A stretch of DNA of 64,000 nt from positions 124,001-188,000 of the forward strand of contig NIVC01001827.1 in assembly GCA_002269645.1 (NCBI GenBank), written 5' to 3'. This DNA is from Macrostomum lignano (Eukaryota). Positions 44,101 to 47,100 of this stretch are shown here, in pieces. Positions within the stretch are counted from its first letter, which is position 1, and the number at the start of each line of letters is the position of its first letter. A program made the translations under genes and the position numbers. The notes beneath the pieces are model-generated. The model saw only the letters and a program-made list of their open reading frames with translations. It did no database searches and had not been told where the DNA came from.

Positions 44101-47100
44101 AGGGCTCCTCAGACCAGACTCTCCACTCCTCAACTCTGTCAAAGAGTCTTGGGGTAACGAGTGTGGCGTCGAGGACCTCGGTCCATCTGCCATTATTAAA
44201 GGTAGGAGTGCTGCCGCGGTTGCAGAGCATGAGGTTTGTGTTAGAGATGAGGGCCAGAAGCTCCTCTCCTCTAGTGTTGGTATCTTTGCTGCCCCAGTGC
44301 TTGTGGTGCGCGTTGAGGTCGCCCCCTAAGCACAGCTCAGCGTTCTGGGACTCGCAGTACTGCGCGAGGCGCAGTAAACTCTCAGGAGCAGGGTCTCTGT
44401 CGCCTGGGATATAAACCGAGGCAACAAGACACGTACGCGGAGAGAAATGATTAGATTGGATGACACAAAGGTCTCCATCAGAGAGATCAGTCCTCAGCCA
44501 AGCTGGAGATGGCTAGCAGCGAGGATAGCCGCTCTAGGGCGGCTGTTCCCCGGGCCACACACATAAAAATCAGAGTAGCCAGAGGGAATGTTGGGCAACT
44601 TACCGTTGCGCATCCAGGGTTCCTGGATCAGGATGAGGCCTGGCCTGTACAGCTCAGCAATCTTCATCAGATTTACTGACGCAGATACGCAATGCTGTAA
44701 ATTAATTTGCAGACAGAATGTCGCTCCTTTGGCAGCGTGGAGCTTAGTCATACTGTATTAAATGCAATTTCTGGCTAGAGCCCAGGGCCATCAAGGAGAC
44801 TTGGACAACAGATCGTCCTCGTCCCAGGCCGCTGGGGCTTGACTGGGAGATGGGAGTTGGTCGACGTCCATGGCCTCCTCACCCCCACCGGCCCCCCAGC
44901 AGAGTCCTCAGGCTCCGATGACAGGATGGAGGAAGCTTCCTCACCTGCATCTTTACCTTCAGACCCCACCAGGGTGGCCGAGGAGAGCTCGGATTCCGAA
45001 GACCCGGCCTCGTCCTCAACTCCTTCTCCGACTGGCAGGTTTGGTTCCCGGGGCTTGGCCGGAGCCGTTACCGCGGTCGCCGAACTGCTGCTAGCAGAGG
45101 GGCGAGATGCAGCTTTGGCTTTGGGATCGGCTTGCGCCTTTCCTTGGGCCTTAGACTGCGCCCCGCTCTTGCCGGAGATGCCGGGGTTGGCAGTAGCCTT
45201 CCCTTTGGCAGACTTTCCTCGGCGCATCTTGAGCTTGAGGGCACCCAGCTGGAAAGAGGATCCATTAGGGTACCGACTCGCCCAAGTGCTGGAAAGGCCG
45301 AGGACAATTGAGTTGCCCGTCTCCCCCCTGCGGACTTTACGGTGATACACCAGTCCACTAGCAGGGAGGTCGGGGTTCAGACGCAGTAGGACCCGGCGAA
45401 TAACGTCTGGTCCAGCTGCGGTGCTCTTAGCAGGGACGAAAACCACATAGGGTATCGTCTTTGGACGCTGGCCCTCGCGAAGAAAAAGAGCTCCGCCAAG
45501 GTCAGCATCCAAGGAGACCGTCGGTAGCCGCTGGAGCAGCCGCCGAGCGTCCTCCTCGCTGCTAGGAGCAATAAGAACGAATGTGCTTCGCAGCACCATC
45601 CGCTCAATGCCGATGGAGATTCCCTCCTCGACAGTCAGCTCAATCAGATAGGAGTCAACAGCACTCCACACTTTTTGAAGCTGATCAGTGGTCCAGTCCT
45701 GGTCGCGACCTTGGATGATCACTCCCGGGATTTTGGCCTTGGCCTTCGCCGCAAAGGTAGCTCCCGAAGGAACCTCCTTGTTGGCAGTGGCCATTTGTTG
45801 CGCCGTGGTTTCGGCCTCAGCAGCCGCGGCAGCAGCTCCAGGGAGCGCCGCCGCTGAACTACTGGAGCTTCCACCGGCCGGCCCGCCTGGTTGCCTTGGG
45901 ACTCCAGTCGCTTCAGCATCCATGGTGGACGCCGCCGCTTTGGCCCCCGCAGCTCCCTTCTTGGCCTGCCTTTTGGCGCGTTGTTTAGCGCGTTTGCGCT
46001 CAAGCCGAGCCCGCTGAGCTTCATCGGATCTGCCAGATTTGGCCGGTCCTTTAGGCTCAGAGCTCGCGGTTCCCTTAGATCCACCAGCGGAGCTGGCAGG
46101 TCTTTGGGTATTTTGAGTTTGGTAGCTCTGGTCGGATCTGCCAGCAGAGCCAGCCGGTCCTTCCTTTGCCACAGTTGAATCAGTCGGTTGGGATCTGCCA
46201 GCAGGGCCGGCCGGTCCTTCGGACTGAGGTTGGGGTTTAGAAGGGTCCCCGTCCCTAGAAAAAGCTTTGTTATCCATAATCGTCTCGAAGGCCATGATAA
46301 AAGGTTGGTGGGCTACCCTCAAAGGGGCGCGGTACCCACCCGGCCGCTCCACCTGACCGGGCAGTAGGCCAATAGCACCCTCAAGGCTGGCCCGACACCA
46401 GGAGGGGGACCGCTTGCGACCGGACTACTCCCCGGCCTTCCAGCCCATCGGCACGGTCAACACCTTAGGCATTAGAGAGTACGTTGAGCAGTCCCACGGC
46501 CTGCAGGTTGGCGAGCCAGACCCGCATACCCAAATTCGGCCGAAGCCACTGGATAGGGTCGCCAGCGCCGGAGCCCAGTCTGTCCAGCAGCCCTAGGGAC
46601 TGCCTTGAACACACGCGGGGACGAGTACCCTGGGTCGACTTGCGAGACAGCGTGGGGGGGGGGTCTGCGGCTGCCAGAGGCAAATAGAGGGTGCAGACCT
46701 CCCACCAGCCTTGACCTGCTGAAGATAGGGGCAGGCGTGAAGCATCGCAGACCTTAGCCCATGGGCCTAGTCTGTCTCATACTTCACTGGCATGCTGAAT
46801 ACGCCTTCGCGTGCCCACACTACCCCACCCCCGACCCGCCCCTATTTTTATTGCCTTTCTCGGAATTTTCCAGCCTAAAACTGCCATGTACATTTCAGTG
46901 GACTGGCTAATGTAGATTACAGTATTGCTGAACCAATTAGCAAGTTGTTTACGCCTGCAAGTTTGGGCTTCTAAACTTATCAAAGCAATTTCAGCTGGCT
47001 TAATTTTTGTAAAATTTTAATAGCTTATTTACTCGTAGAAAGCTGTTTTACTAAGTATATATGGCTGAGTGGCCAATCTAGTTATTTTAGAATCTGTGCA

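Follow-up and report, generated by a model that had tools for sequence, protein, structure and literature searches.

Ribozymes that cleave at the element's own 5′ end have been documented for the retrotransposons R4, Dong, Baggins, L1Tc and RTE (PMC3774820). The R2 elements of Drosophila, Bombyx, other silkmoths and the planarian Schmidtea also carry a hepatitis delta virus (HDV)-like double pseudoknot in the 5′ untranslated region (UTR). The R2 ribozyme spans approximately the first 184 nt of the element (PMC6765202), and that of the planarian has been predicted (PMC3774820). Here we analyzed a 64,000-nucleotide stretch of the flatworm Macrostomum lignano (contig NIVC01001827.1, positions 124,001 to 188,000), hereafter termed the window, which harbors on its minus strand a long interspersed nuclear element (LINE) of 5,893 bp at positions 46814..40922. 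All the parts of the nested double pseudoknot that typifies HDV-like ribozymes occur, in canonical order, within the first 244 nt of this LINE (46814..46571, minus strand). This segment most probably represents a self-cleaving ribozyme at the 5′ terminus of an M. lignano LINE family encoding an apurinic/apyrimidinic endonuclease (APE), a reverse transcriptase (RT) and an RNase H. An HDV-like ribozyme at the 5′ end of a LINE is an already well known arrangement, of which the present locus, as judged from its sequence, is a convincing new example.

A ribozyme-like fold at the 5′ end of the LINE

The LINE is flanked by a perfect 12-bp target-site duplication (TSD), and its 5′ junction on the minus strand reads ...GGGGTAGTGTGG/GCACGCGAAGG..., where the slash marks the edge of the element. 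The 12-mer GGGGTAGTGTGG occurs just twice in the window, as the 5′ copy (46826-46815) and the 3′ copy (40921-40910), both on the minus strand, even when one mismatch is allowed. As the bases abutting the two copies differ, the edges of the element are unambiguous and lie exactly at 46814..40922, with G46814 as base 1. The final base of the 5′ copy (46815..46826) sits directly 5′ of the cleavage site predicted from the fold. In HDV-like ribozymes, the cleaved bond lies just 5′ of the first residue of P1, which is usually a G and often part of a G·U pair. In the present fold, this predicted site, 5′ of the P1 residue G46814 with its G·U pair, coincides with the TSD-defined start of the element. 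Such a base-exact agreement with an independently defined boundary is hard to ascribe to chance.

Along the minus strand, the parts of the fold follow each other in the order P1 - J1/2 - P2 - P3 - L3 - P3′ - P1′ - J1/4 - P4 - J4/2 - P2′. The 5′ strand of P1, GCACGCG (46808..46814), starts at element base 1, immediately 3′ of the predicted scissile bond, and pairs with the 3′ strand CGCGUGU (46611..46617). The resulting 7-bp helix has six Watson-Crick pairs in addition to the wobble between G1 and the last U (46611). P2 is composed of GACCCA (46631..46636) and UGGGCUC (46571..46577), with 4 + 2 bp around a single-C bulge, whereas the 3-bp P3 is formed by GGG (46628..46630) and CCC (46618..46620). 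The loop L3, UACUCGU (46621..46627), is within the 7-8 nt of its class and follows the pattern U-N-C-N-C-G-U, and two of its residues pair with the J1/4 dinucleotide GU (46609..46610) via A46626-U46609 and C46625-G46610, giving the 2-bp P1.1. The P4 hairpin of 26 nt (46583..46608) has an 8-bp core, GGCAGUCC/GGGCUGCU, and a CUA loop. It is followed by J4/2, CAGAC (46578..46582), which corresponds to CNRA plus one extra C and begins with C46582, the predicted catalytic cytosine. The conserved positions are intact, namely the catalytic C, residues U1, C3, C5 and G6 of L3, and all five pairings.

A first-pass annotation of this DNA had proposed that a LINE starts with an HDV-like fold whose cleavage site is the TSD-defined end, and our sequence analysis supports that proposal. 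The 12-bp TSD that was said to bound an element beginning with GCACGCG is confirmed by the two sole copies of GGGGTAGTGTGG and the unambiguous edges. P1, P2, P3, L3, P1.1, P4 and C46582 of J4/2 were each found where that annotation had placed them, and the three hairpins it had named within J1/2 all appear in the predicted J1/2 fold.

J1/2 is a peripheral domain of 171 nt (46637..46807, minus strand) that is predicted to adopt a closed multi-branch structure. Folded alone, it has a minimum free energy (MFE) of -66.8 kcal/mol, with z = -2.06 against shuffled sequences. Its closing helices, GCG/CGC and CAGC/GCUG, leave linkers of 3 nt to P1 and 5 nt to P2. A closed J1/2 fold is the expectation of the “pinch” model for large HDV-like ribozymes, in which a stable J1/2 domain joins P1 and P2 and makes cleavage faster by up to ~1,000-fold (PMC4908430). 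The nested combination of P1, P3, P4 and J1/2 amounts to -91.7 kcal/mol, compared to -98.7 kcal/mol for the unconstrained nested MFE. These figures cover the nested helices, as P2 and P1.1 both need pseudoknot energies. On these modeled values, it is plausible that the proposed fold is energetically sound.

The first-pass annotation had also proposed a descriptor search that allows a long J1/2. Our strict descriptor, which comprises all the fold features listed above and a J1/2 of up to 300 nt, found a sole match in 128 kb (the window, both strands), at 46814..46571. Applied to 3,000 shuffled windows, in which dinucleotides were preserved inside 2-kb blocks, the same descriptor found 11 cores and two full motifs. 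The probability that a given 7-mer fits this P1 is 2.6e-4. A loose descriptor was also used, with a P1 of 6-7 bp, an L3 of 6-9 nt, a J1/4 of 1-3 nt, a J4/2 of 3-5 nt and a P2 of at least 5 bp. With P1 fixed at element base 1, it matched 35 of 50,000 shuffles of bases 8-450 (7e-4). On the real sequence, it matched with C at the catalytic position and with none of A, G or U. Elsewhere in the window, the loose descriptor gave false matches at 27818-28185 (plus strand), ~31188-31507 (minus strand) and ~28033-28154 (minus strand).

Coding layout, copies and surroundings of the LINE

The rest of the 5′ UTR (46296..46570, minus strand, as are all parts of the LINE) extends from the putative ribozyme to the ATG of the first open reading frame (ORF). 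ORF1 (44775..46295) runs from its first ATG at 46295 to a stop at 44775 and is partly of low complexity; it has no Pfam match even at E <= 10. ORF2 (41015..44751), which starts at about 44751, encodes the APE endonuclease, RT and RNase H in addition to a C-terminal Cys/His motif, with Pfam matches to Exo_endo_phos_2, RVT_1 and RNase_H. The 3′ UTR (40922..41014) terminates in ...AAGTCAAAGTCA without a poly(A) tail and is followed by the 3′ copy of the TSD (40910..40921). The set of APE, RT and RNase H in ORF2 fits the LOA clade, to which the first-pass annotation had likened the element, and the same architecture is also common to the I, Tad, Ingi and Nimb clades. The closest named RT matches bear the generic labels “jockey-like” or “R1”, with an identity of 37-43%. 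Assignment to R2 was ruled out by the APE-type endonuclease, the two ORFs, the 12-bp TSD and an insertion site among ordinary genes and repeats.

ORF1 shares an identity of 87-99% with UniRef entries of Macrostomum lignano, which bears out the earlier suggestion of a probable flatworm element, and other M. lignano entries are 93-99% identical to the LINE at the protein level. On this sequence evidence, the LINE family is multi-copy and young. The perfect TSD together with the 93-99% identity to other copies indicates a young insertion that has had little time for decay. At least four shifts of the reading frame break up ORF2 of the present copy, located at the overlaps 44512-44497, 43358-43262, 43041-42900 and 42256-42145 (minus strand). 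As ORF2 is broken, this copy is probably a dead insertion, and the ribozyme would reflect the master element. The M. lignano UniRef model P0054 continues uninterrupted across the last of the frame changes, indicating that the breaks are either decay of the copy at 46814..40922 or indel errors of long reads. The UniRef “genes” of M. lignano that contain stretches of the LINE ORF1 or ORF2 (P0001, P0002, P0003 and P0054) include a UBC9 SUMO-conjugating enzyme, a G protein-coupled receptor and a WSC-domain protein. These models are likely chimeric and derived from unmasked repeats.

Other copies of the 5′ end were sought at several levels. A second copy of the element was looked for in the window and not found. 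A search with the full ORF1 protein matched three of the chimeric M. lignano models, two of which (P0002 and P0003) could be located on no contig on record, and a query with the ORF1 core matched nothing among the proteins searched. A stitched RT query yielded 196 relatives, mostly on short metagenome contigs. At the loci of relatives with an RT identity of 36-51% (L001-L008), the element is 5′-truncated or the loose descriptor returned noise, and nothing was found upstream of the coding region. In metagenomes, a 20-base core pattern had no match, and a 16-base pattern matched at least 120 loci. After filtering for P2, P4, J4/2 and P1, none among the matches listed resembles the candidate, and the 16-base matches were therefore taken as chance matches.

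One metagenome contig from the European Nucleotide Archive, ctg7112_1x_c (1-15850), carries LINE-related RT-RNase H gene pairs arranged head-to-tail at a spacing of ~4.8 kb, with no endonuclease ORF called. It looks like a tandem array of 5′-truncated or unusual LINE units.

The window contains further mobile elements and genes. A long terminal repeat retrotransposon of the Ty3/gypsy type lies at 12756-17254 (minus strand). Its pol ORF is uninterrupted and encodes 1,253 amino acids with protease, RT, RNase H, integrase and an integrase C-terminal domain, preceded upstream by a gag-like ORF with a CCHC zinc knuckle. Fragments of carboxylesterase-family ORFs are present at 4460-5530 (plus), 6540-7469 (plus) and 58470-59546 (minus). 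The near-identical Pfam alignments of the first and the third suggest an inverted gene duplication at the two ends of the window. Among the ORFs resembling host genes, one for an RGS-domain protein is found at 27717-28643 (plus), a Cu/Zn superoxide dismutase (SOD)-like ORF at 49410-50084 (plus), and weak Sel1-repeat-like exons at 39252-40653 (plus), just past the 3′ end of the LINE on the opposite strand. Four minisatellites surround the element, with units of 23 bp (22 copies, 39712-40205), 14 bp (15 copies, 38974-39188), 38 bp (6.7 copies, 47610-47864) and 22 bp (six copies, 48419-48552). A link of the ribozyme to the minisatellites, the Sel1-like ORF or the SOD ORF was rejected, as these are merely sequences flanking the LINE.

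Proposed mechanism and rival explanations

By analogy with the ribozymes of R2, L1Tc, Baggins and RTE, we propose that a transcript entering the LINE from upstream would fold into the nested double pseudoknot. C46582 and Mg2+ would then catalyze the attack by the 2′-OH of the upstream nucleotide, which is G46815 in this copy. The RNA would be cut directly 5′ of G46814, and the product released would be a 5′-OH RNA with element base 1 as its first nucleotide. Once target-primed reverse transcription has copied this RNA to its end, full-length insertions that start at G1 and abut the TSD would result. An insertion starting at G1 next to the TSD, as the proposed mechanism predicts, is what this copy displays. 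The 171-nt J1/2 would fold by itself and probably serve as a “pinch” (P1.2-like) domain, keeping P1 and P2 together. From the same analogy we infer catalysis, co-transcriptional release and a possible role in ORF1 translation; for R2 and L1Tc, a role in translating RNA that lacks a cap has been put forward (PMC6765202).

Several points weigh against the ribozyme assignment. The fold is known from the sequence of a single copy. Both descriptors were designed after the candidate had been seen, such that the chance figures are optimistic. The core shows small departures from the canonical plan, with five instead of four nucleotides in J4/2, a short P2 with a bulged C and an internal mismatch in P4. 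The unconstrained nested MFE structure is without the full P1, and the GCAUGC segment in J1/2 (46795-46790, minus strand) is a possible competing 6-bp partner of the 3′ strand of P1. Moreover, J1/2 includes a homopolymer of ten C residues (46663-46654, minus strand), the length of which the assembly may miscount. Together with the at least four frame changes in ORF2, this run points to possible assembly indels, and the sequence may thus differ from that of the active element. Rfam 15 gave no ribozyme family for the whole window at the gathering score or for 46300-47000 at E <= 10, nor did it for the core alone searched as a truncated sequence (46560-46650 and 46566-46636); the sole matches of these scans were two weak, irrelevant ones. 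HDV-like ribozymes keep their structure and not their sequence, for which reason one study moved from BLAST to a motif (descriptor) search (PMC10879173). The Rfam result therefore speaks against membership in the narrow Rfam sequence families but leaves the fold class untouched; in addition, a 171-nt insertion is costly for a covariance model.

These departures might be read as signs of a relic or of a non-catalytic structure, either in the present copy or throughout its family, leaving at most a structured 5′ UTR that serves protein binding or internal ribosome entry. The ORF2, frame-broken at no fewer than four places, implies that this copy is not under selection. The extra nucleotide in J4/2, the weak bulged P2, the mismatch in P4 and the missing Rfam match would fit such a fate, and the 5′ pseudoknots of R2 are known to bind the R2 protein as well (PMC6765202). 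However, the catalytic C, the L3 residues U1, C3, C5 and G6 and all five pairings have been kept, and the perfect TSD with the 93-99% protein identity to other copies marks the insertion as young. R2 ribozymes also tolerate mismatches in P2 and P1 and a variable P4, and those with comparable imperfections still cleave (PMC3774820). We thus regard a relic or inert structure as improbable.

Considerably less probable is that an internal promoter sets the 5′ end at G46814, with the pairing of bases 1-7 to 46617-46611 being an ordinary UTR helix and the likeness to a ribozyme incidental. Internal promoters are common among LINEs of the I/jockey/LOA group, and a transcription start at +1 is compatible with the sequence of the window. 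L1Tc combines a promoter and a ribozyme in one 77-nt stretch (PMC3383444). Nevertheless, a promoter would leave unexplained the joint occurrence of P2, P3, L3, P1.1 and the C of J4/2 in the canonical order, and promoter and ribozyme can coexist. The least probable of all appears to be that a GC-rich 5′ UTR matches purely by chance, even though the loose descriptor has a few false matches elsewhere in the window and the descriptors had been adjusted post hoc. This reading is opposed by the two full matches of the strict descriptor in the 3,000 shuffled windows, the value of 7e-4 for the loose descriptor with P1 at +1, and the independent TSD boundary that agrees to the base. Furthermore, such ribozymes are known to occur exactly at this place, the start of an APE LINE.

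Comparison with known ribozymes and retrotransposons

An HDV-like ribozyme at the 5′ end of this LINE would provide a precise and testable annotation of how one abundant LINE family in Macrostomum lignano, a model for regeneration, forms its 5′ end. The host list of HDV-like ribozymes would grow by a flatworm that is free-living and by an APE LINE with an RNase H, and the motif could locate full-length copies and mark where LINEs begin in a genome very rich in repeats. As a natural ribozyme whose J1/2 is large and has several helices, the candidate could also be used to test the published “pinch” model. The current picture of ribozyme-processed retrotransposons is unchanged by this example.

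The suggestion of the first-pass annotation that a large-J1/2 version may be undescribed did not hold, as the J1/2 loops of silkmoth R2 ribozymes span 216-498 nt (PMC3774820). Structured J1/2 domains have also been dissected kinetically, including the 44-nt J1/2-P1.2 of drz-Agam-2-1 (PMC4908430). The literature consulted, which is incomplete, contained no HDV-like ribozyme described from Macrostomum or from flatworm LINEs other than R2. It is a tentative and rather doubtful proposal that the candidate is the first of its class in such a LINE and that its multi-branched 171-nt J1/2 goes beyond a passive “pinch” as a family-specific module. Such a module might, for example, bind proteins of the element itself or let ribosomes enter the uncapped 5′-OH RNA internally.

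For a direct comparison, drz-Agam-2-1 (PMC4908430 Table S1) and drz-Mtgn-1 (PMC10879173), with sequences taken from the papers, were threaded on the plan of the candidate. All three share L3 = U-N-C-N-C-G-U and J4/2 = C-N-R-A, with L3 UCCACGU and J4/2 CUAA in drz-Agam-2-1 (PMC4908430) and L3 UUCCCGU and J4/2 CUAA in drz-Mtgn-1 (PMC10879173). The sequences of P1, P2, P3 and P1.1 differ from those of the two reference ribozymes, with the pairing kept. Similar to drz-Agam-2-1, a ribozyme from mosquito, the candidate has a 7-bp P1, a 3-bp P3 and a self-folding J1/2 domain, and in drz-Agam-2-1 this domain speeds cleavage experimentally by pinching P1 and P2 together (PMC4908430). However, the J1/2 of drz-Agam-2-1 is 44 nt long with one helix, compared to 171 nt and a predicted multi-branched fold in the candidate. 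The partner of G1 is C in drz-Agam-2-1 and U in the candidate, P4 is 85 nt versus 26 nt, and J4/2 is four versus five nucleotides.

The L3 pattern of the candidate is also found in the mammalian CPEB3 ribozyme, where a primer for mouse Cpeb3 reads G-TTCACGT-CGC at 18 nt from the cleavage site. The J1/4 of the CPEB3 ribozyme is GU as well. In the candidate, the L3 A can pair with the U of J1/4, which completes a 2-bp P1.1. In addition, the CPEB3 ribozyme is compact, at ~68 nt, intronic and single-copy, and lies outside mobile elements.

The candidate resembles the R2 ribozymes in its double pseudoknot within the 5′ UTR, but the elements themselves differ. R2 possesses a restriction-like endonuclease and a single ORF, whereas the present LINE combines an APE domain and an RNase H with two ORFs and a TSD. 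R2 is site-specific for 28S rDNA and often cleaves upstream in the 28S sequence, in contrast to the candidate LINE, which lies among ordinary genes.

A similar arrangement is seen in Baggins1, a LOA element of Drosophila, and L1Tc of Trypanosoma cruzi, in which the ribozyme likewise occupies the first bases of the element and cleaves at base 1 (PMC3774820). Both elements insert without site specificity, and the role expected of their ribozymes is that expected of the candidate, namely release from longer transcripts. L1Tc also has the APE-RT-RNase H organization, with TSDs usually of 12 bp (PMC6765202). However, L1TcRz is compact, with 77 nt, compared to the 244 nt of the candidate with its 171-nt J1/2, and unlike Baggins1 and L1Tc, the candidate resides in a free-living flatworm.

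Among flatworms, the APE-type LINE Perere-3 of Schistosoma mansoni likewise has a 5′ end made by a self-cleaving ribozyme beside the TSD (PMC8501958). The Perere-3 ribozyme is a twister variant in which the TSD supplies a strand of P1, whereas the candidate is HDV-like and has a different geometry (PMC8501958). If the tentative reading given above is true, the 5′ ends of flatworm LINEs would have come to be made by ribozymes of different classes, HDV-like in Macrostomum and twister in Schistosoma.

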